Sequence record: PV231354.1
Reading direction: 5' to 3' (one strand)
Length of the DNA: 64,000 bases
In this document: piece after piece, positions 35,006 through 47,658 of the stretch
How positions within the stretch are numbered: position 1 is the first letter of the stretch
Layout: every line of letters begins with the position of its first letter
Notes under the pieces: generated by a model
The model's input: only the letters and a program-made list of their open reading frames with translations
Databases searched by the model: none
What the model was told of the DNA's origin: nothing
Program-made: the position numbers and the translations under genes

Positions 35006-36065
35006 GGAGCACCTTGAGAATCTGGTCGCCGATCCAGTCCACCATCGGGACGATCAGGCTGTTGCCGATGATGGTGCGGCGCTCGGTGTCGGAGAGGCCC
35101 GGCACGTCGGTGTGGGTTCCCGACATCCCCATCAGGCGCTCACACTCGGCCACGGTGTGGTTGCGGATGCGCCAGTCGCCGCGCTCGTGGACCAGGAGCA
35201 TGCCGATGCTGGAGCCGCCCGAGGCGGTGCGCAGGCAGTTGGCGATCTGGCCGCCTTCTTCGATCTGCTGGCCGTCGAAGCCGTTGATCACCCGGCCCCG
35301 GACGGCGACGGTGCGAGCCCGAAAGACAGGGCGGCCGTCAATTCCGGGGACAACGTCCGCCCCGCTTTCGTAGCGTTGTCCAAGAGCGTCGCACGGCGGG
35401 ACGGGCTCATGTACAATGCGGCGGGGATCGATTCCGGAGCGTCGAGTACACGCGACAAGGACAAGCCGCCGGCGGGACTGGGGGACGCCGAACTCGGGGC
35501 CGTCGAAGACCCGCCACGCGATGGCGCGACGGGGTCCCAGCACGTAACCACAGTCCGGCCACCGACGCCCTGCCTTGTGGTCGTCACCTTCGGGCTTTCC
35601 GTAGGGGTAGAGGGCGTCGCGCTCGCCGGCGAGGCGGCCGAGGAACTGTCCAAAGGCGTTGTCCTTGTTGTTGAGGAGCTTGACGACGTTCTCGAAGCAG
35701 AAGATCGGCGGGTCGATTTCGTCGACCAGCCGCAGCCCCGAGAGCGTCAGGCGCCCGCGCGGGTCATCCAGGCCCAGGCCCTTGCCGGCCTCGCTCCACG
35801 CTTGGCAGGGGAACGACGCCCAGAAGACGTCGAGCGTGCCCTCGTGCTGCGTCCCGTCGATCTCCTCCAGGTCGCCCAGGTTGGGCACCGTGCTCCAATG
35901 GTGAGCGAGGAGCTTGATCGGCGCGGACGCGATTTCGCTGAAGAAGCGAGCCTTGCCACCCTTCTTCTCCCAGGCGTAGGACGGGATGTCCGCGCCGGAG
36001 CAAAGGGTCGCAAAGGCCCACGGCTGGACGTCGGAGGCGTCCGCCTGGAGAGGGATCGGGGGCAT
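34992..36065 (-). CDS. C5 cytosine DNA methyltransferase
   Basis: LCSGAD (motif I variant), FPCQAWS (catalytic PC), FENV, PQSRRR, ECERLMG, IGNS. Confidence 0.85.
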   Translation of the reverse strand: MPPIPLQADASDVQPWAFATLCSGADIPSYAWEKKGGKARFFSEIASAPIKLLAHHWSTVPNLGDLEEIDGTQHEGTLDVFWASFPCQAWSEAGKGLGLDDPRGRLTLSGLRLVDEIDPPIFCFENVVKLLNNKDNAFGQFLGRLAGERDALYPYGKPEGDDHKAGRRWPDCGYVLGPRRAIAWRVFDGPEFGVPQSRRRLVLVACTRRSGIDPRRIVHEPVPPCDALGQRYESGADVVPGIDGRPVFRARTVAVRGRVINGFDGQQIEEGGQIANCLRTASGGSSIGMLLVHERGDWRIRNHTVAECERLMGMSGTHTDVPGLSDTERRTIIGNSLIVPMVDWIGDQILKVLHEAA

Positions 36066-36119
36066 GAGGTATGGTTAACCGATGTCGTGAATCACGTCAA
36101 GAAATGTCGTCGGGGACGA

Positions 36120-36878
36120 CTACTTCTGACCGTTGGCGGCGGCGATCTCGGCGTCCGTGAGGAGCCGGCGACCGGTGGTCTTGACCTCGCCGCGCCAGAC
36201 GCGGTCGGCCATCTTCAGGAAGGCCTTGGCGACCTTCTGCTTGTTCTCGTGGCCGATGTGGCGCGCCATCGACAGCGGCCAGCGCGGGGGCAGGGCGTAG
36301 AAGAACATCACCCCCGGCTTGGTGTAGGCATCGACGACGAAGTCGCCGGCCATCCGCTGGTTGACCGAGAACGACTGGTCGCCCAGGATCGCGGTGTTGG
36401 TGTCGTCATAGTAGCCGATGCCGAGCCTGATCTTGTCGATCGCGCTGTCGTAGGCCAGCCAGATGAGGCGCCCGTCACCCAGGCTGACCTCGTCGACCTT
36501 CCAGTCCTCGGGATGGCCCCAGACGGCGTCGTGAGCCATCCGGATGGCCTCGGCCAGCAGCGAGGTGACCGACTTCATCTCGCCGCCGGCCACGAACATG
36601 TCGTCGGTCGTGAGGTCGAGGGTCTTGTCGACGCCAAACAGCGGGGCCAGCTTGCCGGCCTTGAACGAGAAGCCCTCGCGCTCGATCTTGTCGGCGATCT
36701 CGTAGGCGAAGCCCGGCTTGAGGTTGAACGTCATCACGTGGGTGACGTTCAGCCCCGAGGCGGACTCGTGCCCGAGCCCAATCTGGATCGATTGGGTCTC
36801 GTCGGTGACCAGGGCGTAGAGGAAGCCGCCTTTCGGGCGCGTCGGGAACGGCACGCGGCGGGAGACGAGAAGGGTCAT
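36120..36878 (-). CDS. Hypothetical protein
   Basis: 252-aa ORF, GC3-rich, coupled to the upstream gene. Confidence 0.65.
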   Translation of the reverse strand: MTLLVSRRVPFPTRPKGGFLYALVTDETQSIQIGLGHESASGLNVTHVMTFNLKPGFAYEIADKIEREGFSFKAGKLAPLFGVDKTLDLTTDDMFVAGGEMKSVTSLLAEAIRMAHDAVWGHPEDWKVDEVSLGDGRLIWLAYDSAIDKIRLGIGYYDDTNTAILGDQSFSVNQRMAGDFVVDAYTKPGVMFFYALPPRWPLSMARHIGHENKQKVAKAFLKMADRVWRGEVKTTGRRLLTDAEIAAANGQK

Positions 36879-36888
36879 CGGGGCCTCG

Positions 36889-38589
36889 TTACAGGTGCCA
36901 GCGCGAGCCGGTGAAGGTGATCAGCGCGCGCTTGCCGTTCGGGTATTGCACGCAGTGGGTGTGCGCCCAGGACGAGGGACCCTTGTTGTAGCCCATGTCG
37001 AGCAGGGAGGTCGTCCCGGTGTTGTAGGCGCTCTCGTAGATGCCCGGCGAATGGGTATGGCCGAACGTCACCTTCGGCCCCAGTTCGGCGAACTGCTTGA
37101 TGTTGCCGCGCGAGCCGTTGGTCCCGTTGTGGCCGTGGACCGAGTGCTCGACCTTGCCCTTCATGTGGGATTGGTCCTGGAAGAGGAACTTGACCCCCTC
37201 GCAGGCCCAGGCCGTGAACTTGTTCTGCATGACCCAGGAGAAGATCGAGAACCCGCTTTCGCGCTCGCGGATCGAGCGGTATTTGCGCGCCTGACATTCC
37301 AGGAAGAACTCGGCGTTGACCGGGTCCTGGCGGTAGTCGGCCGTCTTCAGCCACTTCTCAAGCGCCAGATCGTGGTTGCTCTCGACCACCGCGATCTCGG
37401 TGTCGGGGTGGTCGGCCGCCAGGACCGACATGAACATCGCCACCTCGCGAAGCTCTTCCTCGACGCTCTCGGTCCCGTTGATGTAGAGCCAGTAGCGGTC
37501 GTGGGGGTCGGAGATGTTGTGGTGGTTGCGCGCCCGGAAGTCCGAGACGTCGTGCAGGAACACGTTCTCGGGCCGCAGGACGTCGATCATGCTGGGCGTC
37601 GCCTGCTTGACCCAGACGCGGCCGTTCGCCGTGCGCTGCTCGGTGGGGAAGAACCCGAACGTGCCGGCCGAGACCTGGGGGTCGATCTGGGCGACGTGGA
37701 TGTCGCCCGGCGTCAGGGCGGTGACCCGGTGGGCCTCGGTGACCTTGCCGTCCTGGACGAAGCGGTCCAGGTCGTAGAACGAGCCGTCCTTGTCGCCCAG
37801 CAGGTGGCGGCAGAAGAACGTGCCGTCCTCGTCGATCTCGACCAGGACAGCCCCGAGTTGGTGGTGGTGCTGGGCCTTCTGGCCCGCCAGCTTGGGAATG
37901 TAGTTCGGCTTGGTGACGGCGCCGGTCGTCATGTTCTGCTTGGACGGCTGGTCCTTCATCGTCGCGATGCTGGCCAGTTGGACCTTGGCGTGCGGGAAGA
38001 TGCCCCAGCGCTCACCCGAGTAGGTCTTCAGGCCTGAGATCGGGTTGACGTTGGTCGGCAGGGCGTTGATGTTGCCCAGGAACTCGACGCGGTCGCCCAG
38101 TTGGACGCGATCGACGATCAGGTAGTCCATGACGCGCTCGTGGTAGACCGAGGCGTGCTTGGCGTGATCTTCGAACAGGCGCTTGGAGTAGGTGAAGCCG
38201 GCGATCATGATGTCGCACGGTGCGTCCTGGCGCAGGTATTCGGCGTAGGCCTCCAGGTTGTCCACGAACTCGTCATGGACGTAGGTGGCGTCCTGGGCCG
38301 ACGACAGAATGAAGCGCCGGCGCCCGGTGTCGGGGCCGACCGGGATGACCCGCGCTTCCGGGATCGGGCGGTGCGAGAACGGGTCCTTGCGCATCGCGTA
38401 GAGGCGATTTTGCAGGGTCGTGCGCTTGACGCTGTACTTGCGGGAGAACGCCCGCTGGCCGCCGGCCTTCTTGACCATCGCCAGCAGTTCGATCGGCTCG
38501 ACCGAGTAGATGTCGAAGGGGCCGTCCTTGGGCAGGGTCACCTTCATCCGCTTGGCGGCCTTGGAGGCGTGTTCGAACTCAGCCGGCAT
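36889..38589 (-). CDS. Putative calcineurin-like metallophosphoesterase with an N-terminal HTH-like region
   Basis: GDIH, FLHD, VESNHD, VHGHNG, FGHTHSP motifs. Confidence 0.7.
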   Translation of the reverse strand: MPAEFEHASKAAKRMKVTLPKDGPFDIYSVEPIELLAMVKKAGGQRAFSRKYSVKRTTLQNRLYAMRKDPFSHRPIPEARVIPVGPDTGRRRFILSSAQDATYVHDEFVDNLEAYAEYLRQDAPCDIMIAGFTYSKRLFEDHAKHASVYHERVMDYLIVDRVQLGDRVEFLGNINALPTNVNPISGLKTYSGERWGIFPHAKVQLASIATMKDQPSKQNMTTGAVTKPNYIPKLAGQKAQHHHQLGAVLVEIDEDGTFFCRHLLGDKDGSFYDLDRFVQDGKVTEAHRVTALTPGDIHVAQIDPQVSAGTFGFFPTEQRTANGRVWVKQATPSMIDVLRPENVFLHDVSDFRARNHHNISDPHDRYWLYINGTESVEEELREVAMFMSVLAADHPDTEIAVVESNHDLALEKWLKTADYRQDPVNAEFFLECQARKYRSIRERESGFSIFSWVMQNKFTAWACEGVKFLFQDQSHMKGKVEHSVHGHNGTNGSRGNIKQFAELGPKVTFGHTHSPGIYESAYNTGTTSLLDMGYNKGPSSWAHTHCVQYPNGKRALITFTGSRWHL

Positions 38590-39280
38590 AGAGAAGCTCC
38601 GGTTTGGCGCTGACGGGCTTGGACCAGTCCCAGACGAACCACGCGTAGGCGAAGCGCGGCGCGCCCTTGGTCCCCTCGATCCAGCGGGGGCGATGGCGAA
38701 GGGTGACCTTCGCGGCGAAGGCGGGGTGATCGAAGAGGTCGGCGCGCGAGCGCGCGGCGTCCCATTCGTGGCGGCAGAGGAAGGCGACGAAGCCCTTGTC
38801 GGCTTCCATCAGCTTCAGGGCATGACGGGCGGCGCGCTCGGCGTCCTTACCGTAGGGCGGGTTGGAGATGATGGCGTCCGGGCGCGCCGGCAGCGGGGTG
38901 ACCTTGCGTTCCTTGCCCTCGTCGTCGAGGACCACCGCCGGCCGGGCCTTCAGCGCGCCCAGGCGATCCAGGTCGTCCGGCGTGAGCTTGAAGAAGTCCT
39001 CGACCGCGTCCACGTCGAAGCCCTCGTAGCGATGGATGTCCGTGGAAAGGACCTCCTGCACGTAGGGCCGCAGCGGGTTGGCGATCGCGCCGTTGCCCGC
39101 GAAGGGCTCCCAGACATAGAAGCCGGCGAACTCGTCGCCCATGGCCTCGATCAGCGCGTCGAACGCGGGACGAGGCGTCGGATAGAAATCCAAGGGGTTC
39201 CTGGCATAGCCCGAGGCGCCCAGCATGGAGGGGTCTTTGCGACCGGCATCGGAGAGAGACATGGCCAGGAGGGATGTCAT
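38579..39280 (-). CDS. Amino-type (N6-adenine/N4-cytosine) DNA methyltransferase
   Basis: DFYPTP, WEPFAGNG (SAM-binding), IISNPPY (catalytic motif IV). Confidence 0.8.
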   Translation of the reverse strand: MTSLLAMSLSDAGRKDPSMLGASGYARNPLDFYPTPRPAFDALIEAMGDEFAGFYVWEPFAGNGAIANPLRPYVQEVLSTDIHRYEGFDVDAVEDFFKLTPDDLDRLGALKARPAVVLDDEGKERKVTPLPARPDAIISNPPYGKDAERAARHALKLMEADKGFVAFLCRHEWDAARSRADLFDHPAFAAKVTLRHRPRWIEGTKGAPRFAYAWFVWDWSKPVSAKPELLYAG

Positions 39281-39339
39281 GGTTAACGAAGGGTGTCAAG
39301 ATTCACGACATTGACTGTCGTGACGCACCACGCTACACA
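39279..39339. promoter_or_regulatory. Back-to-back promoters: leftward TCGTGAATCTTGAC (39295-39308) and rightward TTGACT-17-TACACA (39311-39339)
   Basis: Motifs read directly; ATGGTTAAC at 39279-39287. Confidence 0.6.
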
Positions 39340-39972
39340 CCCTCGACGAGGCGGTCTCCTGCTCCTAGCGCGCGCTCTCCAGCCTTTCCGAGGGCGATGC
39401 GCCGGACCTGCTGAGCATGGGAATCCAGAGCGAGGCAGCGCTCTGCTCCCCAAAGAGTGGGCCAAGCGGTGCGGGCGGAAAGGCTCCGGGTCCGTGGCTC
39501 CATGCAATGCGCAGGAGAGACCGTGCTCCTTCTGACGCAGCGGGCGCCCGACGTTGCGGGTCGTGAGGCGAGGCCGGCCGAGATGATCAACGGCCTGGGG
39601 CGGGAGGGGCTTGACCTCTCCCGCATCCGCCTCTAGCGTCACCATCAATCAGGCGCAGCACTGCCTCACGATCGGACCATGTTCGGCTCCCGGTCCTGGA
39701 GCTTGGAAGCCTCACTCTGGAGCAGGACTGCCGCTGCGCCGGGGACGGTTTGGACGACGCACCCGTCCATGAGGCGAACGCCGGCCAAGACATGGCACGA
39801 GGCGTGACGGGGACCAGAGGTCCCACTCCATTCGCCGCGCCGGCGGCAGCAAAGCTCATTGAGCGGATGGTGGCACGGGTGCGAGCCCGATTTTGAGAGC
39901 CAGCGGAGAGCCACCTTCCTCCCTGGCCCGGCGACGACGAAAGCTGGGTGGCTGTAACCGCTCGTCTGAGGG
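39340..39972 (+). ncRNA. Putative large structured ncRNA (~630 nt), family unknown
   Basis: 5' CCCTCGACGAGGCGGT pairs with 3' ACCGCTCGTCTGAGGG; multiple internal helices; promoter upstream, terminator downstream; no credible ORF. Confidence 0.62.
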
Positions 39973-39998
39973 ATGCGTCCCCAAGATCATCAAGACGC

Positions 39999-40030
39999 AA
40001 AAGGCCCCGATCTCGCGATCGGGGCCTTTC
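39999..40030. terminator. Bidirectional intrinsic terminator
   Basis: AAAAGGCCCCGATC-TCGC-GATCGGGGCCTTTC between the convergent large RNA and tRNA-Cys. Confidence 0.8.
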
Positions 40031-40036
40031 AAATTC

Positions 40037-40125
40037 TGGAGCTACGGGAGGGACTCGAACCCTCATAGGTGTCGCCACCAGCAGAGATTTGCAATCCCGC
40101 GCCTAACCTCTCGGACCACCGTAGC
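40037..40125 (-). tRNA. tRNA-Cys(GCA) with a long variable arm
   Basis: GCTACGG/CCGTAGC acceptor stem, U73-CCA encoded, loop TTGCAAA, T arm GAGGG-TTCGAGT-CCCTC, variable hairpin GGTG-GCGA-CACC. Confidence 0.85.
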
Positions 40126-40311
40126 AAAACGGGACTGACGCCCGAAGGCCCAGCCCCGTTCCCGACGATCCAAGGGAGTGCCGTAGCTGTCCCAAGGAGC
40201 ACCGTGACGGCGTGGCAGGCGACTGAAGCCGTCAAGTCGAAGGGCTTCCGGCGCCGGTCACCCTAACCTCCGGGCTCTTGCGAGCGCGAGTGAGGTCCTC
40301 CTACGCCGATC

Positions 40312-40402
40312 CTTATAGCCGAGCCTTCACGCGTCCGCAACGAAAAATGTGTCGTGAGTGATGACTTTTTCCTTGACACCTTCGATTAGGCTCTGGTAGA
40401 GA
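40312..40402. promoter_or_regulatory. Divergent promoters: leftward TTGCGG-17-TATAAG and rightward TTGACA-18-TAGAGA
   Basis: Hexamers at 40335-40340/40312-40317 (minus) and 40373-40378/40397-40402 (plus). Confidence 0.55.
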
Positions 40403-40404
40403 AC

Positions 40405-40760
40405 AGGCATCGTTGTAATTCGGACAACGGAAACGGCGGCAAGACAGGGGTGCGATTCCCCTCGCCTCCACCATGAGCATCCGGCGCTGGGAGTACGCGA
40501 CTCCTGGGCAGGGAGTGTTACCCTGGCGGGCTGCGGCCCGAGCCAAAGGTAGCCGGGTGCTCATGACGGGGGCGATCAGCTTCGATTGGCGCATGTGACT
40601 GGAAGACGCAACGGTGGGTGACCTCCAGGCCAGCTTGCTGGTGATCGGGTCGAAGCAACAGAAATGTCGCTGCAAATGACAACGCTCCGTTCGCGGTGCG
40701 TGAAGCCATCGCCGCCTAATAAGCGGTAGAGGCGTGTCCCGGCGGACGCGCGTGTCACAA
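40405..40760 (+). ncRNA. ssrA: Circularly permuted (two-piece) tmRNA; tag ANDNAPFAVREAIAA
   Basis: Acceptor piece ends AGGGG-TGCGATT-CCCCT-CGCCTCC-A-CCA (40473); coding piece starts GGGGGCG (40568), giving G3.U70; tag ORF 40672-40719 followed by a second TAA; outer ends approximate. Confidence 0.9.
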
Positions 40761-40901
40761 AAAGGCCCTGCATCTACGGACCGGGGCCAGTCCGCCACCC
40801 ACCTTTCGCAGGCGGGGACCTAACTTCGGACGTCTGTCGGGCGATGGATGTTCACCTTGGGTCCCCGTCTTCGAAAGGTGGTCGAAAGACCGTCTAAAAG
40901 A

Positions 40902-40980
40902 CGCGGGGTAGAGGAGTCCGGTTGTCCTCGTCTGGCTCATAACCAGAAGATCAGGGGTTCAAATCCCCTTCCCGCTCCCA
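40902..40980 (+). tRNA. tRNA-Met(CAT), initiator-like
   Basis: CGCGGGG 5' end with C1:U72 mismatch, TCTGG-CTCATAA-CCAGA, AGGGG-TTCAAAT-CCCCT, CCA encoded. Confidence 0.85.
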
Positions 40981-41230
40981 GGACCTGAACGCCGAGGGAC
41001 TCCTAAAGAACGACGGCGTGACACGCTCGGAGAGAACGAGCACTGCAATCCGGGCTATGAGACCGTGATGTAGCGGACGCCGAAGCGAGAGCAGGCGTGA
41101 CACCTGGAGAGACGGGACCAGTTTTCCAGGCCGCATGCTCTCCCGCTCCGGCGAAGGGCGCCGGCGTCAGGGGATGAGGCTAGTTCCCGGCGAAGTGAAA
41201 GCCAGGGCATGCGGCTTGGAAAACTGGTTT

Positions 41231-41317
41231 GGTACGGTGGCTCGACAGGTAAGGCATCGGCCTCATAAGCCGAGGGACTAGCTCCCGATCCTGGTTCAAA
41301 TCCAGGTCGTACCTCCA
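41231..41317 (+). tRNA. tRNA with CAT anticodon, long variable arm and U73 (Met or Ile2; identity uncertain)
   Basis: GGTACGG/TCGTACC, TCGGC-CTCATAA-GCCGA, variable hairpin GGGA-CTAGC-TCCC, CCTGG-TTCAAAT-CCAGG, T-CCA. Confidence 0.82.
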
Positions 41318-41427
41318 ATTCCAGAAGTGCGCTACCCACATAGCTCGGCGAGTTCGTGCTCGGGGCGCTTAAAGAAGAGACAACCCGAAAGGGGAGTAAC
41401 GCGTTCTCGCTTCTGTGACACAACATG

Positions 41428-41458
41428 ACGGCCGCCGGGGCGATCCGGCGGCCGTTTT
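41428..41458 (+). terminator. Intrinsic terminator ending the RNA operon
   Basis: ACGGCCGCCGG-GGCGAT-CCGGCGGCCGT-TTT. Confidence 0.8.
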
Positions 41459-41462
41459 GCTG

Positions 41463-41500
41463 TCGTGAATCTTGACACCTAGGGTCGAGCTAGGCATTAT
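41463..41500 (+). promoter_or_regulatory. Promoter TCGTGAATCTTGACA-17-CATTAT
   Basis: Exact motif copy upstream of the cadherin-repeat gene. Confidence 0.65.
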
Positions 41501-41528
41501 GCCGCTTGACTTTCAGGAGATTTGTGTC

Positions 41529-44246
41529 GTGGCTCGATCCACTCGTTCCGTCGCGTTGGCGCGCGTCGTCACGCCCGCGCAACTGAAGCGCGACATCCGT
41601 ATTCGCCGTGCTGACGAACTGGCTGGGCCGAGCGGCCCCAATGGCATGGTCCTGATCGGGATCACCAACGACCGCGTCATGGAGAACAGCGCGCCCGGCA
41701 CGCCCGTGGGCGACATCTTCACGATCCCGGCCGGCGCCGACATCGAACTGGTCACCACCGGCGGCAATCGCTTCGACCTCGTCGGCTCGACCCTGGTCGT
41801 GGGCTCCACGCCCCTGGACCACGAGGCCACGCCCGTCGTCAACGTCCTGGTCCATGCCGAGTACGCGGGATCGACGCTGGAGACCACGCTGCCGATCACG
41901 ATCCTCAACGAGACCGAGGTGATCGGCGTCACCCTCTCGGCCAACACCGTGCTGGAGAACACGGCCGCCGGCGTGACGATCGGGACCCTGACGCCCAATC
42001 CGGCGGACGCCACGCTTCAGGTCGTCGGTCCCTATGCCGGCTACTTCACGGTCGCGGCCGGCAACATCCTGAAGACCGGGGCGACGCCGACCGATTACGA
42101 GACCGCGCCCAACCTGACCGACCACTCCTACCCGGTGACGATCGCCGCCACCCGCCAGGGTGAGACGGCCAATTTCACCATCCCGGTCTTCGTGTTGAAC
42201 CAAGTCGAGATCACCAACATCACGCTCTCGGCCAACCACATTGCCGAAGGCTCGGGCAGCGGGACGGTGGTGGGCGGCCTGACCTCCACGCCGTCGGGCG
42301 CGACCTTCTCGCTGGTCGACAACGCCGGCTCGCGCTTCGCCCTGGCCGGCAACAACGTCGTCGCCGGTAGCGTCGCCACCAACTACGACACCGCCACCCA
42401 GCACGACATCACCGTGCGCGGCACGATCGGCAACGAGAGCCTCAACAAGACCTTCACGATCCTGGTCGACAACGTCAACTCGATCAGCGACATCACCCTG
42501 ACGGGCGCGTCGGTCAACGAGAACACCGCCGCTGGCGTCACCGTCGGGACCTTCGCCACCGTGCCGCCCGGCCTGCCGCTGACCCTGACCAACACCGCCG
42601 GCAACTGTTTCACCCTGGTGGGCAACACCCTCCAGACGGGCGCGGTGGCGACCAACTACGAGGTCGCCCAGACCCTTCAGGTCACCGCCCAGGCGACGTT
42701 CGGCAGCGACACCCTATCGAAGAACTTCACGATCACCGTGGTCGACATCGACGAGATCAGCGACATCGCGCTCTCGGGCAACTCGGTGACCGAGAACACG
42801 GCCGCTGGCGTCACCGTCGGCGCCCTGACCTCCACGCCCACGGGCGCGACGTTCTCGATCGTCTCCCAGACGCCGGCCGGGGCCTACTTCACCATCAACG
42901 GCGCCAACCTCCAGACGGGGGCGACCCCGACCAACTACGAGGCCAACACCAGCCACTCGGTCACGATCCGGGGCACCCGGCAAAGCGAGACCTTCGACAA
43001 GACCTTCACGATCAACGTGGCGGACGTCGACGAGATCAACAACATCACCCTGACGGGCTCGTCCTTGAACGAGAACTCGCCCCAGGGCACGACGGTGGGC
43101 ACGCTGTCGGCCGCGCCGATCGACTCCGGCGTGACCTACTCGATCGTCTCCCAGACGCCGTCGGGCAACTACCTCCAGATCACCAGCAACATCCTTCAGG
43201 CCGGCTCGACCTCGACCAACTACGAGGCCAACACCAGCCACTCGGTCACGATCCGGGGGACGCGCTTGAGCGAGACCTTCGACAAGACGTTCACGGTCAA
43301 CATCAACGATCTGGTCGAGATCAGCGACATCACGCTGTCGCCGGCGTCGGTGGACGAGAACACCGGCCCTGGCGTCGGTGTTGGCACCCTCTCGTCGACT
43401 CCTGCGGGGGCGTCCTTCGTGCTGACCAACAGCGCGGGAAGTCGTTTCGCGTTGTCGGGTAGCACGATCCTGACCGGCTCAGTGGCCACGGACTACGAGA
43501 GCTTCCAGAGCCACGACATTGTCGTGACGGGTACGCGGCTGGGTCAAAGCTTGGCGAAAACCATCACGATCACCGTCAACGACGTGAACGAAGCCCCGCC
43601 CGCGCCTGACCTGGACAGCTTCAGCCTCTCGGGCAACTCGCTCCAAGAGAACTCGGCAGCGGGCACCCCGATCGGGACCTTCTCGTCCTCGCCCTCGGGC
43701 GCCACTTATGTCCTGACCGACAGCGCGGGCGGCCGGGTTTCGCTCTCGGGCGCCAACCTCTCGGCGGGCTCGACCAACACCGACTACGAGACCACGCCCT
43801 CGTTCTCGATCGGCGTCACCGCGACGCGCGGCGCGACCTCGATCCCGCAGAACTTCACGATCAACGTCGGCGACGTCTCGGAAGGTGGTGGCGGTGGCGG
43901 CGGGAGCCAGACGCTGACGCCCGGCGGCGGTGGCAACCGCTCGGCAATCGCGACTGGCCCCGGCGAGCAGGCTGTCACGGGTACGATCCAAATCACGATC
44001 AACGGCGGAACTGCTCCCTATAGCTTCTCCTGGGAACTGGTCAGCGGCGATTCGCAGGTTTATGTGGCCCAAGCCGACTCGGGCACCACGGGAAGGTCTG
44101 GGGACCTGGGCTATTGGTACTTGGCCCAGAATGACCGCCCCGCCAACCGGACGGCGGTTTATCGCTGCAAGGTCACGGATGCGGTCGGGAACTACGGCTA
44201 CTCCTCGAACTGCACGATCAACTGCCAGCAGACGAACCCCGCCTAA
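41529..44246 (+). CDS. Cadherin-like repeat protein (8 repeats plus a C-terminal Ig-like domain)
   Basis: Repeats I.LS..SV.EN...GT.VG.L...NYE......V......F.I.V.D..E; probable start GTG at 41529 after CAGGAG; own promoter and terminator. Confidence 0.8.
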   Translation: MARSTRSVALARVVTPAQLKRDIRIRRADELAGPSGPNGMVLIGITNDRVMENSAPGTPVGDIFTIPAGADIELVTTGGNRFDLVGSTLVVGSTPLDHEATPVVNVLVHAEYAGSTLETTLPITILNETEVIGVTLSANTVLENTAAGVTIGTLTPNPADATLQVVGPYAGYFTVAAGNILKTGATPTDYETAPNLTDHSYPVTIAATRQGETANFTIPVFVLNQVEITNITLSANHIAEGSGSGTVVGGLTSTPSGATFSLVDNAGSRFALAGNNVVAGSVATNYDTATQHDITVRGTIGNESLNKTFTILVDNVNSISDITLTGASVNENTAAGVTVGTFATVPPGLPLTLTNTAGNCFTLVGNTLQTGAVATNYEVAQTLQVTAQATFGSDTLSKNFTITVVDIDEISDIALSGNSVTENTAAGVTVGALTSTPTGATFSIVSQTPAGAYFTINGANLQTGATPTNYEANTSHSVTIRGTRQSETFDKTFTINVADVDEINNITLTGSSLNENSPQGTTVGTLSAAPIDSGVTYSIVSQTPSGNYLQITSNILQAGSTSTNYEANTSHSVTIRGTRLSETFDKTFTVNINDLVEISDITLSPASVDENTGPGVGVGTLSSTPAGASFVLTNSAGSRFALSGSTILTGSVATDYESFQSHDIVVTGTRLGQSLAKTITITVNDVNEAPPAPDLDSFSLSGNSLQENSAAGTPIGTFSSSPSGATYVLTDSAGGRVSLSGANLSAGSTNTDYETTPSFSIGVTATRGATSIPQNFTINVGDVSEGGGGGGGSQTLTPGGGGNRSAIATGPGEQAVTGTIQITINGGTAPYSFSWELVSGDSQVYVAQADSGTTGRSGDLGYWYLAQNDRPANRTAVYRCKVTDAVGNYGYSSNCTINCQQTNPA

Positions 44247-44248
44247 AC

Positions 44249-44283
44249 CAACCGCCCAGGCTCAGCCTGGGCGGTTTTCTTTT
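44249..44283. terminator. Bidirectional intrinsic terminator
   Basis: AACCGCCCAGG-CTCAG-CCTGGGCGGTT plus a T tract, between convergent genes. Confidence 0.8.
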
Positions 44284-44287
44284 GGGC

Positions 44288-44701
44288 CTAGACCTCCAGG
44301 AAGAACGCTTCGACGCCCTGGGTCTTGCCGAGAACAAGCCAATCATCCCCCAGGAACTGGAGGGAAATGGCGATGCGCCGGATGGGGAAAGACGGCGGCG
44401 CTTTCTTGATCACCTGGAAGCCTGAGGTGACGCTGTCGCCCTCGAAGAACTGCGCGACATTGGGATCGATGACCGAAAGGCCGGCGAGCTTGAATTTCTG
44501 GCCGACAGGCGCGGCATTGCCGAATGTGAACCGGACCAGGACGATGTCGCCGATTTCATTGGCAGGCCCAAGCAGCGTGGGGTAATACCCCGCCGCATCG
44601 CCCGAGACGACGTCGATGATCGTCTCCCCGTTCGGGTTGAGCAAGGTCCCCGAGTATTCCTGCACATTGGCTTCGGTCAATAGGACGGTGCGACGTGTCA
44701 T
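44288..44701 (-). CDS. Hypothetical protein
   Basis: 137-aa ORF with GGAG RBS; somewhat lower GC. Confidence 0.6.
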   Translation of the reverse strand: MTRRTVLLTEANVQEYSGTLLNPNGETIIDVVSGDAAGYYPTLLGPANEIGDIVLVRFTFGNAAPVGQKFKLAGLSVIDPNVAQFFEGDSVTSGFQVIKKAPPSFPIRRIAISLQFLGDDWLVLGKTQGVEAFFLEV

Positions 44702-44854
44702 GCGGTACTCCTAGCCGGCCCAGCGCCGGCAGAGCTTCCTAGCCGAACTCAACGTCAGGTTCCAGACACTATTTCATGACGGCGCTTGACCACCGCGACC
44801 GATCTGCTACCTTCACCGTGGTAGCGACGCGTCCTTCCTGACAGCAGTCAAACC

Positions 44855-44886
44855 AAAGCCGCCGGAGCCTAGCTTCGGCGGCTTTC
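44855..44886 (-). terminator. Intrinsic terminator
   Basis: AAAGCCGCCGGAGC-CTA-GCTTCGGCGGCTTT immediately after a stop codon. Confidence 0.7.
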
Positions 44887-45237
44887 CTATTCCACGACCC
44901 GCAGCTTGCGCGCGGCCTGGGAGCGCTCCATCGCCGCGTAGCGCGACACGTCCTGGAGGTGGGCCTTGGCGATGAGATCGGGCGCGCCCACGGCCCGGAA
45001 CGGTACGGCGGGGGAGAGTTCGACGTAGCGCCGCAGCAGCGGCTCGAACTCCAGGTCCCGCGCCTTGGCCAGCCGGGAGAGGGCGCCGGCGACGATCGCC
45101 ACCACAAGGACGGTGGCGGGGGTCTCCTTGGTCAGGTTCCAGACGCCCGGCAAGGTCTGGCCTGGATGGAGCGGCTGGCGCGCGACATCGTCGGCGGCAG
45201 CGCGAAAGATGTTCTCGTAGGGGACGCCATCAATCAT
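44887..45237 (-). CDS. Hypothetical protein
   Basis: ORF starting MIDGVPYE. Confidence 0.55.
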   Translation of the reverse strand: MIDGVPYENIFRAAADDVARQPLHPGQTLPGVWNLTKETPATVLVVAIVAGALSRLAKARDLEFEPLLRRYVELSPAVPFRAVGAPDLIAKAHLQDVSRYAAMERSQAARKLRVVE

Positions 45238-45319
45238 GGGTTGGGACACTTACTCAAACCGAGCAGGCTGTCTACCATCTACCCTTGCTAGTAGAAATGT
45301 CGGTTTTACAACACAGACG

Positions 45320-45715
45320 CTAAATCCGCCCACCGTAGTAATCGCGCCACATCCCTTCCCAGTAGGCCTCATGCTCCTCGGTGCAGTGCGGACAGTAGCG
45401 GCGATCGCGGTTTGGGTCCTCGCCCTTGCCGTCCCAGTGGTAGCAGGTCATCGAGCCGACCATGGCCAGCCGCCAGAACGTGCCGCAATGCTCGCACCCG
45501 CCCAGGGCGATGTTCTGCATCAGCCGGTGGCCGTTCCACCATGCCTGGGGCCGGCGCCAGAGTTCATAGACCAGCGCCGAGCGGATGCTGGGGTACTGGT
45601 GGAGCCCGACCTGGACGACCTTGCGCCGGCCCTGGGGCTCGACCTTGCCTCCGGCCCAGCGGTAGGTCGGCTCGTGGTAGACCTTGATCTTCGGGAGCCA
45701 GCGGCGCTTCTTCAC
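45320..45715 (-). CDS. Hypothetical protein with CxxC motifs
   Basis: GTGA overlap with the helicase stop; CEHC and CPHC pairs. Confidence 0.6.
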   Translation of the reverse strand: MKKRRWLPKIKVYHEPTYRWAGGKVEPQGRRKVVQVGLHQYPSIRSALVYELWRRPQAWWNGHRLMQNIALGGCEHCGTFWRLAMVGSMTCYHWDGKGEDPNRDRRYCPHCTEEHEAYWEGMWRDYYGGRI

Positions 45716-47658
45716 GTGTCCATGACCTTCGCGATGTTGTCCTCCTTCTCCTTGGCGGCCTGGGCGATGCGCGCGTCGAGCGAACCGTTGGCCACCAGGA
45801 AGAAGCACATGATTTTCTCGGCCGTCTGACCAATCCGGCAGGCGCGGTCCTCGGCCTGCTCGATCAGGGTCGGCGTCCAGTCCCCCTCGGCGAACGCCAC
45901 GTCGTGCGCCCGCGTCATGGTGAAGCCTACACCGGCGGCCTGGAGGTTGCAAACGATGACCCGGCAGGTCTCGTCCTCCTGGAACTTGTCGACCTGAAGC
46001 TGGCGCTTGTTGACGGGGGTCCCGCCGTAGATCATCGCCGGATTGTAGTCGGCCAGGGCCTCGGCGAGCGCCTTGACGACGTCGGAGTGGTAGGCGAACA
46101 GGATCAGCTTGTCGCCGCCGTCCAGGAAGTTCTTGACCCACGGGATGATCGCCGGGAGCTTGGCCATCCCCAGTTCGCGGCGGACGGCGGCGATCTCCTC
46201 GAACAGCACCGCCACGGCCGGCGGGGCAAGGCCCAGCACGGCGGCGGCGTAGTCGAGGTTGAGCGCCCGCGAGTTGGGCTTGTCGGGATCGCCGTCGACG
46301 CCCACGGCCTTGTCGAAACCGTAGGCCTGGGCCGTCTCCAGGGCCGCCAGCCCCAGCCGGATGTCGCGCTGATCCTCGGTCTCGTTGTCGCCGGCCAGGA
46401 CCGAGGACTCGTAGAGCTTCAGGGCCTGGGTAAGCTCGTCCTCGCGCGCCACCACCTCGCGGATTTCCGGGCTGTCGAGGAGCACGACTTGCCGGAACTT
46501 CGGGGGAAGCTCGGGCAGCACCTCGCGCTTGTTGCGCCGGACCATGAAGGTCGAGCGCAGGCGATAGCCTAGCTCCTCCAGGTTCGAGGCGCCGGTGAAG
46601 TTGTAGGCCCCGTTCTTGCCGCGCGTGTTGTCGAACCAGCCCTCGCAGTAGCGATAGCCGTAGTCGTTGTAGCTCTTGCCCAGGCCGTCGGGATCGAAGG
46701 CCTTGACGATCGACCACATCTCGATCGGGCGGTTCATCATCGGCGTGCCCGACAGGAAGACCCGCCGCTTGGCGTCGACCGGGTTGAACCAGATGTCGGC
46801 CAGCACCGGCTCGCGGTTCTCGGCCTCGGCCTTCTTGATCTCGGCGGCGTTGGCCTCCTTGCGCTTCTTGCGCACGGCCGCTTTGGAGCGGGCGTCCATC
46901 TGCTCGCCGCCCAGGATGAAGATCGTCCGACCACTGTCGGGGGTCTTGATCGCGTGGCACTCGTCGCAGACCAGCAGGTCCCAGGGAGCGTCGTGGATTT
47001 CCTTGGAGAAGCGCTCCAGGATGTCGTAGTTGATGATCACCACGTCGGTCTTGGGCCACCAGCGCGGGTGGACGACCTTCTTGAAGCGCGGCTTGCCGTT
47101 CTTGTAGAAGCCGTCGCGCACGGTCTCGCGGTAGCGGGTCTCGGCGATCCCCACCGTCAGGCCCTTGCTGCACCAGAGCTTCCACTCGCGGCGCCAGTTC
47201 TCCTTCAGCGACGCCGGCACCACCACCAGCACGCGGCGGATTTTCTTCATCGCGTTGGAGACGCCGACCGCCTGGATCGTCTTGCCCAGGCCGGGCGGAT
47301 CGGCGATGAGCGTGTCGCGCCGGCCCGGCAGGGTGGCGAAGTCGATCCCCGCGCGCTGGAATGGCTTGAAGTCCCAGCCCTTGGCCTCGACCGCCTTGGA
47401 GATCGGCGGCCAGAAATCGCAGTCGGCCTTGTAGGAAAGCTCGCGGCTGATGTTGGCCAGATGCTCGCGCCGCCCGAGTTCGTCGAGCGCGTTGGCCTTC
47501 CAGACCACGCCCGCCACCTTGAGGGCGACGGCGGGATTGTGGGTGATCAGCGCCTTGCGCGGCGGGCTCCAGCTAAAGCCGGCCTCCTGGAACCGCTTGC
47601 GGTCTTCCCATTCGGTGACGGCCCAGAAGTAGCCGTCTCGGTAGTCGATAAATGCCAT
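45712..47658 (-). CDS. SNF2-family (HARP-like) helicase
   Basis: ADPPGLGKT, VVVPASL..NW, CDECH, LSGTP, AGVGFTMT, EQAEDRACRIGQ. Confidence 0.92.
   Translation of the reverse strand: MAFIDYRDGYFWAVTEWEDRKRFQEAGFSWSPPRKALITHNPAVALKVAGVVWKANALDELGRREHLANISRELSYKADCDFWPPISKAVEAKGWDFKPFQRAGIDFATLPGRRDTLIADPPGLGKTIQAVGVSNAMKKIRRVLVVVPASLKENWRREWKLWCSKGLTVGIAETRYRETVRDGFYKNGKPRFKKVVHPRWWPKTDVVIINYDILERFSKEIHDAPWDLLVCDECHAIKTPDSGRTIFILGGEQMDARSKAAVRKKRKEANAAEIKKAEAENREPVLADIWFNPVDAKRRVFLSGTPMMNRPIEMWSIVKAFDPDGLGKSYNDYGYRYCEGWFDNTRGKNGAYNFTGASNLEELGYRLRSTFMVRRNKREVLPELPPKFRQVVLLDSPEIREVVAREDELTQALKLYESSVLAGDNETEDQRDIRLGLAALETAQAYGFDKAVGVDGDPDKPNSRALNLDYAAAVLGLAPPAVAVLFEEIAAVRRELGMAKLPAIIPWVKNFLDGGDKLILFAYHSDVVKALAEALADYNPAMIYGGTPVNKRQLQVDKFQEDETCRVIVCNLQAAGVGFTMTRAHDVAFAEGDWTPTLIEQAEDRACRIGQTAEKIMCFFLVANGSLDARIAQAAKEKEDNIAKVMDT

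Follow-up and report, generated by a model that had tools for sequence, protein, structure and literature searches.

A probable two-piece tmRNA gene of alphaproteobacterial type, conserved in Caulobacter phage RBC8 and other phiCbK-like phages

Introduction

What occupies the stretch between a tRNA-Cys gene and a tRNA-Met gene in the genome of Caulobacter phage RBC8, where the sequence record (PV231354) carries no annotation? A sequence-only reading of 64,000 nt of this record (the window) had placed a phage-encoded, circularly permuted transfer-messenger RNA (tmRNA) with a divergent tag at positions 40405-40760. We find that window positions ~40409-40790 (+) very probably hold the gene for a two-piece (circularly permuted) tmRNA of alphaproteobacterial type, complete, conserved, encoded by the phage, and with a role in ribosome rescue. 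The location given by the sequence-only reading therefore stands, and its extent is revised: the gene probably runs from ~40409, a predicted transcription start, to ~40790.

Window positions 36000-46000 are 100% identical to phages RBC8 and RBC11, 99.9% identical to RBC63, and ~95% identical to CcrRogue and BL64, which bears out the proposed phage origin. RBC8 and RBC11 are phiCbK-like giant siphophages of the CcrRogue type (Dolichocephalovirinae, genus Poindextervirus) that infect C. vibrioides CB15.

Results

Identity and structure of the gene

The Rfam family RF04321 (tmRNA_permuted) matches the window at 40411-40719 (+) over the full length of the model (1-213/213) with 89.8 bits, compared with a gathering score of 47 (E 5.9e-16 for the whole 64-kb window); the match is far above chance level. 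As had been read from the letters, an acceptor piece ending ...CGCCUCCACCA (40463-40473) precedes a coding piece starting GGGGGCG (40568-40574). Together they form seven acceptor pairs (G40568-C40469, G-C, G40570·U40467, G-C, G-C, C-G, and G40574-C40463), followed by A40470 and an encoded CCA; the third pair is the G3·U70 alanine determinant. In CcrRogue the acceptor end reads CCACCACCA (L002, ~1590-1600), with one extra CCA relative to RBC8, and the BL64 match (L012) has the same length and coordinates as that of Rogue, so that the extra CCA is probably common to both.

A query of 421 nt finds 30 records from Caulobacter phages and one from a Brevundimonas phage. The locus was fetched from eleven of these phages: the Poindextervirus members Rogue, BL64, and BL10; the Shapirovirus-type phages BL57, phiCbK, Karma, Magneto, and Swift; the Colossusvirus members Colossus and CcrPW; and the Brevundimonas phage Bajun. 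In all eleven, RF04321 matches at the syntenic site (69-90 bits), and the tmRNA lies upstream of two tRNA-Met genes on the same strand. The window copy is 85-95% identical to the Shapirovirus and Poindextervirus copies.

Covariation was counted by script on an alignment of 11 sequences (A1), with BL64 left out. The acceptor stem is paired in 77/77 cases, with a compensatory change at 1/7 pairs (pair 5, G-C to C-G), and G3·U70 is kept in 11/11 copies; the T stem is paired in 55/55 cases, with compensatory changes at 2/5 pairs. The inner and outer parts of helix P2 are 97% paired (compensatory 3/6) and 93% paired (1/5), respectively. In pseudoknot 1 (PK1), stem 1 is 97% paired (compensatory 1/3, U-A to A-U in Colossus and CcrPW) and stem 2 is 100% paired (1/5). 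A hairpin in PK1 loop 3, capped by CUUG or UUCG loops and absent in Bajun, is 95% paired (compensatory 2/4), and the closing stem of the segment between the two pieces is 91% paired, with compensatory changes at 6/12 pairs. Together with the RF04321 match, these counts uphold the assignment to a circularly permuted alphaproteobacterial-type tmRNA with an intact tRNA-like domain.

The intervening segment, comprising a 12-bp closing stem and three or four hairpins, folds with a minimum free energy of -53.3 kcal/mol (z -3.85), and 0/200 shuffled sequences are equally stable. It measures 81-118 nt in the phages vs. 28-33 nt in 68 Caulobacterales host genes.

Thermodynamic folding of both pieces recovers the acceptor stem and T arm. 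It also pairs 40434-41 with the resume region at 40665-72 in place of P2, a fold that we reject because it is impossible in Colossus and CcrPW, and covariation backs P2. The complementarity itself extends over 8 bp, between the P2 5' strand CGGCGGCA (40434-40441) and UGUCGCUG (40665-40672), which spans the resume codon; in phiCbK a similar 7-bp pairing with GCCGCCA is possible, and Colossus and CcrPW cannot form it. This may be a chance complementarity of GC-rich Ala codons and P2. A G at T-loop position 55 combined with AG in the D-loop analogue was considered as a phage-specific compensated change and dropped; host tmRNA has the identical bases, so the combination is a trait of the lineage.

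Tag and resume codon

In the window, the in-frame sequence ANDNAPFAVREAIAA begins with GCA at 40672-74 and stops before UAA UAA at 40717-40722; these are the resume codon and the 15-codon tag of the sequence-only reading. The in-frame codons GUC GCU (40666-40671) stand directly upstream. The motif AAAUGUC is unchanged in all 11 aligned phages, whereas the position of the GCA codon is occupied by GCA in RBC8, Rogue, and Bajun, by GCC in phiCbK and BL57, by GAC in Karma, Magneto, and Swift, and by UCG in BL10; Colossus and CcrPW are without this codon and read GUC AAC GAC AAC. The corresponding host sequence is ...cuAAAU|GCG AAC GAU AAC, and AAAU stands right before the resume codon in 35/68 host genes and 56/100 viral alpha-type genes, being the commonest -4 to -1 context in both. 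The distance from PK1 to GUC in the phages is 13-14 nt, compared with 11 nt from PK1 to the resume codon in the host and ~20 nt from PK1 to GCA. The tmRNA finder ARAGORN itself selects GUC as the tag start.

Resume-codon placement is set by positions -6 to +1, as read by SmpB (PMC3985003), and the SmpB that reads this resume context would be the host's. By this comparison the resume codon is probably GUC (40666-68), which fits every phage. Resumption at GUC would give the tag Ala-VAANDNAPFAVREAIAA, so that the AA end and the tandem UAA described earlier hold, and the length probably does not, 17 codons being likelier than 15. The next codon, GCU, is an unlikely candidate for the resume position. 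In E. coli tmRNA, a GUC directly precedes the resume codon.

The tag reads VAANDNAPFAVREAIAA in RBC8, Rogue, and Bajun, VASNDNDVVAYASAREAIAA in BL10, VAANDNDVVAFASAREAIAA in phiCbK and BL57, VADNDNDVVAFASAREAIAA in Karma, Magneto, and Swift, VNDNDAPVMEQLLAA in Colossus, and VNDNDAPVMEQRLAA in CcrPW. The V, the NDN, and the (I/L)AA end are invariant in all phage tags, and the middle is variable. Every tag has (I/L)AA followed by a stop; in the window this end reads AUC GCC GCC UAA UAA. Indels within the tag measure 6 and 9 nt and so keep the frame; in the rest of the gene, most indel lengths are not divisible by three. IAA ends are seen in host-clade tags too. In E. coli, the N-terminal part of the ssrA tag is recognised by SspB and its C-terminal AA by ClpX. 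The invariant NDN and (I/L)AA would thus be the parts read by the degradation machinery, which argues for ordinary recognition and not avoidance.

The tag and the sequence following it (40666-40810) are 86-98% identical between Rogue-type phages and both Bajun (L010 1501-1620) and a viral contig (L195), and the remainder of the gene has diverged past blastn detection between Rogue-type phages and Bajun-type Brevundimonas phages. BL10, which belongs to the same genus as RBC8, has a phiCbK-type tag. These patterns suggest that a tag module has been exchanged between Rogue-type and Bajun-type phages.

Relationship to the host tmRNA

A degenerate scan for ANDNFAE(E/D) identifies at least 120 host loci, nearly all Caulobacterales among the matches listed, and ARAGORN reads ANDNFAEEFAVAA in 13 of them, including the inspected Caulobacter loci and one C. 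vibrioides genome. The Caulobacter host tag had thus been quoted correctly, and the phage tag VAANDNAPFAVREAIAA does differ from it in mid-sequence, where the host has FAEEF.

The two-piece tmRNA of C. vibrioides/crescentus (RF01849), reportedly described by Keiler, Shapiro, and Williams in 2000, and the phage gene share the order of acceptor piece, excised loop, and coding piece; the unusual T loop UGCGAUU, the AUCAG D-loop analogue, G3·U70, and ACCA; the architecture of PK1 (CGG/CCG and GGCCC/GGGCC in the host); and the AAAU|G resume context, NDN core, and hydrophobic-AA end. For a phage tmRNA that has to work with the AlaRS, SmpB, EF-Tu, and RNase P of the host, a tRNA-like domain of host type is expected. 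In contrast, the phage gene is ~90 nt longer, with an excised segment of 94 nt vs. about 30 nt; its PK1 loop 3 holds an additional hairpin, the 5' hairpin is missing, the 3' region differs, the stops are tandem, and the probable resume codon encodes Val where the host has Ala.

Outside the tRNA-like domain, no similarity to the sampled host genes is detectable; the best host match is 88% over 26 nt, and these are the last 26 nt of that domain. In a rough tree (a short alignment of a 112-nt core, with no support values), the Caulobacter-phage genes other than those of CcrSC and CcrBL9 form one clade beside the Caulobacterales hosts, separate from the remaining viral alpha-type tmRNAs; the Bajun gene branches at the base of the host clade, and those of CcrSC and CcrBL9 lie just outside the group made up of phages and hosts. 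Based on this tree and on the confinement of host similarity to 26 nt, the phage tmRNA looks like an old phage lineage and not a recent capture.

Partners and promoter

E. coli K-12 SmpB matches 68 phage records by tblastn, none of them from a Caulobacter or Brevundimonas phage, and the search with E. coli SmpB in the window returned noise only (E >=2.9). The statement that no smpB is present in the window is therefore correct, and none is present in the related phage genomes either. With no phage smpB, host SmpB, AlaRS, and RNase P would have to serve the phage tmRNA.

The promoter-like element upstream of the gene (Table 1) consists of CTTGACA, 17-18 nt, and a TAnnnn hexamer, at a fixed distance from the gene in all 11 Caulobacter phages, with a spacer of varying sequence; Bajun has TTGACA-17-TATAGG, farther upstream. 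A strict sigma-70 scan did not list the element at 40373-40402. Transcription is predicted to start at ~40408-40411, where the modelled acceptor piece has its 5' end.

Evidence against a functional tmRNA, and alternative explanations

Several results count against a complete, functional tmRNA. The window copy stays below the gathering score of alpha_tmRNA (RF01849, 50 bits), scoring <43.4 bits, a bound set by a 43.4-bit beta_tmRNA match that displaced RF01849 within the same clan; scores elsewhere are 240.6 bits for the host, 66.8 for CcrPW, 57.4 for Bajun, and 53.5 for Colossus. This shortfall fits the insertions and the differing 5' and 3' ends of the phage family. With default settings ARAGORN reports the three neighbouring tRNAs of the window and no tmRNA; when the threshold is relaxed by 5%, it reports a permuted tmRNA at 40381-40810 with the tag VAANDNAPFAVREAIAA and both stops, so the default miss reflects a marginal score and not a gene defect. 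The checks by Rfam and ARAGORN that had been proposed thus agree for RF04321 and for relaxed ARAGORN, and fail for default ARAGORN and the RF01849 cut-off. For a second pseudoknot, the candidate stem 2 (strand 40781-85) is 75% paired across the phages, and none of several hand-built models is well supported. The region after the tag folds no more stably than shuffled sequence (z -0.3); it does hold a solid 8-bp hairpin, and an A-rich element (CAACAGAA/CACAAAAA) that aligns the phages with the host is homologous to loop 3 of the host second pseudoknot. The assignment of the resume codon depends on comparison between phages and host. No excess of third-position substitutions was found in the tag among the aligned phages, and the case for translation consequently rests on the frame, the ends, and the stop codons. 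In view of the in-frame indels, the invariant ends, and this lack of excess, the frame and both ends of the tag appear constrained and the middle not visibly so.

The sequence-only reading in its full version holds that translation resumes at GCA 40672, giving the 15-residue tag ANDNAPFAVREAIAA, whose changed middle re-routes tagged proteins to or from SspB and particular proteases. The Rfam alignment does set its consensus GCa resume codon on GCA 40672, the ANDN start would then equal the host ANDN start exactly, and the middle of the tag is unlike host FAEEF. However, sister phages have GCC, GAC, or UCG at that position, and Colossus and CcrPW lack the codon, whereas AAAUGUC is invariant; the -4 to -1 context of GCA would be CGCU, unlike any common host context, in a system where positioning depends on -6 to +1 as read by SmpB (PMC3985003); and it would lie 20 nt from PK1, vs. 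11 nt in the host. Re-routing in turn sits poorly with the invariant NDN and (I/L)AA ends. Both GCA as the resume codon and the full version built on it are improbable, GUC being the likelier start. A still less probable proposal is that the phage tmRNA acts mainly by competition or as a decoy, sequestering host SmpB or blocking the host tmRNA, and does not tag. The phage is without its own SmpB, and in mycobacteriophage DS6A a gene consisting only of a tRNA-like domain (TLD) resembles strong tmRNA inhibitors, perhaps titrating SmpB (PMC4131195; PMC11915505). Yet PK1, the resume context, an open tag frame with in-frame indels, the AA end, and the stops are kept in all 11 phages, and a pure decoy would need none of these.

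We also consider it very unlikely that the locus is a dead host ssrA remnant, functionless in itself and left by imprecise excision or as an attachment site. Integration often targets tmRNA genes, and pieces of such genes are found in prophages (PMC9004378; PMC4131195); the gene here, however, is complete, shows compensatory changes across three phage genera and a Brevundimonas phage, resembles the sampled hosts only in 26 nt of the tRNA-like domain (88%), has no integrase within 6 kb, and is preceded by a conserved promoter-like element of its own. In several phages an open frame covers most of the region on the minus strand, and record PV745554 annotates a hypothetical protein there (BL64_127c; L012 1448-1789 (-)), but a protein encoded by open reading frame (ORF) 40313-40798 (-), of 161 aa, can hardly be what the region is for: neither Pfam nor PHROG gives a match at E up to 1, substitutions fall evenly on all codon positions, the lengths of most indels separating the phages are not divisible by three, and antisense open frames are common in DNA of about 61-62% G+C. 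We therefore reject BL64_127c and ORF 40313-40798 (-) as spurious, on the lack of a family match, the lack of codon-position bias, and the frame-breaking indels.

Distribution and annotation in other phages

With default settings ARAGORN calls the tmRNA in phiCbK, Karma, Magneto, Swift, BL57, CcrPW, and Bajun, and misses it in Rogue, BL64, BL10, and Colossus. A 2022 ARAGORN survey counted 53 two-piece forms among 133 distinct phage tmRNAs (Buchholz et al., PMC9004378). In Table S1 of the survey, 'Permuted' entries are given for phiCbK, Karma, Magneto, Swift, CcrPW, CcrSC, and CcrBL9; Rogue, BL10, and Colossus are not in that table. The absence of the Rogue-type phages (RBC8/11/63, Rogue, BL64, BL10) and Colossus from Table S1 and from GenBank annotation follows from scores just under the ARAGORN default threshold. 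The Bajun record (ON529858) annotates a feature 'tmRNA', with the same tag as the window. The implied novelty of a phage tmRNA at this locus is accordingly not sustained, the same gene having already been listed or annotated in sister phages. tmRNA is unmentioned in the 2012 phiCbK genomics paper, the supplement of the 2025 tmRNA database paper is without a phage list, and the tag sequences given here were not found in print in the literature searched. A 2026 announcement reports, by ARAGORN, one tmRNA for phage Shash and 0 for Senya (PMC13459779); given the default misses, the latter count may be a false negative. A scan of IMG/VR for the alpha-type tRNA-like domain returned at least 120 loci.

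Features of the gene and its surroundings

The 3' limit of the coding piece (Table 1) is an estimate, based on where the alpha_tmRNA model ends in the homologous CcrPW and host genes and on the tentative strand of a second pseudoknot at 40781-85.

Table 1. Coordinates of the modelled tmRNA gene and adjacent features in the window
Feature	Position	Strand	Basis or detail
Promoter-like element	40373..40402	+	TTGACA 40373-78, 18-nt spacer, TAGAGA 40397-40402; putative function
Acceptor piece (3' piece of mature RNA)	40409..40473	+	Rfam alignment; 5' end placed from promoter
P2 5' strands	40411-15, 40436-38, 40440-42	+	Rfam alignment
T arm	40446-40462	+	Rfam alignment; loop UGCGAUU
Acceptor 3' strand	40463-69	+	
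Discriminator	A40470	+	
Encoded CCA	40471-73	+	
Intervening segment	40474..40567	+	94 nt; probably removed in maturation, by analogy with host
Closing stem of intervening segment	40474-85/40552-63	+	12 bp
Hairpins in intervening segment	40487-40507, 40509-25, 40527-40	+	then single-stranded UGAC before G40568
Coding piece (5' piece of mature RNA)	40568..40790	+	Rfam alignment; 3' end approximate
Acceptor 5' strand	40568-74	+	GGGGGCG
D-loop analogue		+	AUCAGCUUCGA
P2 3' strands	40586-92, 40609-13	+	
Pseudoknot 1	40615..40651	+	stem 1 40615-17/40625-27; stem 2 40620-24/40647-51
Family-specific hairpin in PK1 loop 3	40630-33/40638-41	+	CUUG loop
Resume context	40662-65	+	AAAU
Probable resume codon	40666-68	+	GUC
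Tag frame	40666-40716	+	VAANDNAPFAVREAIAA
Tandem stops	40717-22	+	UAA UAA
Post-tag hairpin	40732..40751	+	GCGUGUCC-CGGC-GGACGCGC, then A-rich stretch ACAAAAAG
Initiator-like tRNA-Met	40902-40980	+	ARAGORN, Rfam
Long-arm tRNA-Met(CAU)	41231-41317	+	ARAGORN, Rfam
Terminator-like GC-rich hairpin, then UUUU	41428-41455	+	after second tRNA-Met; next promoter-like site beyond

It is plausible that the tmRNA and the two tRNA-Met genes form a single transcription unit. The first tRNA-Met is initiator-like, with a C1·U72 mismatch atop the acceptor stem, and is named tRNA-fMet in the BL10 record. The second (87 nt) and the tRNA-Cys(GCA) at 40037-40125 (-) (89 nt) are alike in build: the variable arm is long and class-II-like, with a stem of 4-5 bp, the D stem has 3 bp, the discriminator is U, and CCA is encoded. 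These two long-arm tRNAs measure 85-89 nt in all related phages; Cys and Met/Ile tRNAs do not usually have such arms.

In the Shapirovirus-type phages phiCbK, Karma, Magneto, Swift, and BL57 (L004 460-946 (-), L005 508-994 (-), L006, L007, and L008), the opposite strand carries a GOLLD RNA (RF02032, 165-171 bits vs. a cut-off of 150) ~500 nt upstream of the tmRNA, and this RNA encloses a tRNA-Gly or tRNA-Lys gene. Rfam gave no GOLLD match in the Rogue-type window.

Discussion

Of the explanation that we favour for this locus, a two-piece tmRNA that acts in ribosome rescue, the gene model and its conservation are given directly by the data above, and the remaining steps are drawn from homology with the Caulobacter host gene. 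Transcription would begin from a sigma-70-like promoter, at the 5' end of the acceptor piece or close to it; host RNase P would cut before G40568, and the structured 94-nt segment between CCA40473 and G40568 would be discarded, leaving two pieces held together by the acceptor stem and P2. Host AlaRS would charge the phage tmRNA via G3·U70 and A73, and host SmpB and EF-Tu would bring it to ribosomes stalled on broken mRNAs. Translation would then resume, most probably at GUC 40666, adding Ala-VAANDNAPFAVREAIAA, and the ...AA-COOH end would mark the tagged protein for ClpXP. In this way the phage may top up or replace host ribosome-rescue capacity during infection.

The window gene adds an expected member to an established class: knowledge of phage tmRNAs goes back to those of mycobacteriophages (PMC4131195), and two-piece phage forms are common. 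The sister phages phiCbK, Karma, Magneto, Swift, CcrPW, CcrSC, and CcrBL9, as well as Bajun and Shash, share an orthologous gene at the same locus, upstream of two tRNA-Met genes, and the Rogue-type and Colossus copies differ from the sister-phage copies in the middle of the tag (APFAV vs. DVVAFASA). The marine phages Melnitz and the Pelagibacter phages HTVC008M and Mosig have two-piece tmRNAs (PMC9004378), and are likewise examples of a phage-borne, alpha-type permuted tmRNA near tRNA genes with no phage smpB. They differ in phage family and host, in tags that start with A, and, for Melnitz, in a glutamine riboswitch in the tmRNA 3' domain (PMC9004378), whereas the tmRNA region of the window has no riboswitch match in Rfam. 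Mycobacteriophages (the Bxz1 group and DS6A) resemble RBC8 in being lytic phages with tmRNA-type genes beside tRNA sets (PMC4131195), but their forms are one-piece (Bxz1) or tagless (DS6A, TLD-only and of the inhibitory type), while the window gene keeps every tagging part; TLD-only mimics have no tag frame and no pseudoknots, and here the tag frame and PK1 are present and conserved. What is new is modest: an invariant Val codon after a host-type resume signal, a structured excised segment three times the host length, an extra PK1 hairpin, the presence of the gene throughout this phage subfamily, and an apparent exchange of the tag region between Rogue-type and Bajun-type phages.

For annotation, at least RBC8, RBC11, RBC63, CcrRogue, BL64, CcrBL10, and CcrColossus carry a tmRNA gene that is omitted from their records, and the BL64 record has a spurious coding sequence over it. 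Where default ARAGORN has given '0 tmRNAs', as for a 225-kb relative, the count is probably a false negative.

The tmRNA is a universal syntenic feature of the phiCbK-like phages examined, including lineages that default ARAGORN misses; in these phages it always occurs without an SmpB of their own, and always with a Val codon right after a host-type resume signal. Caulobacter is a good system for asking what phage tmRNAs do, because the host tmRNA is cell-cycle regulated and genetics is easy. A more far-reaching role is doubtful: the Val-Ala N-terminal extension and changed middle of the tag might alter handling by SspB-alpha/ClpXP (or another protease), and the differing 3' region together with a lack of cell-cycle control might let the phage tmRNA escape RNase R-dependent, cell-cycle-timed tmRNA destruction. 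If that were so, ribosome rescue in infected cells would no longer be tied to the host cycle, and the same might apply to the timing of DNA replication that depends on tmRNA.

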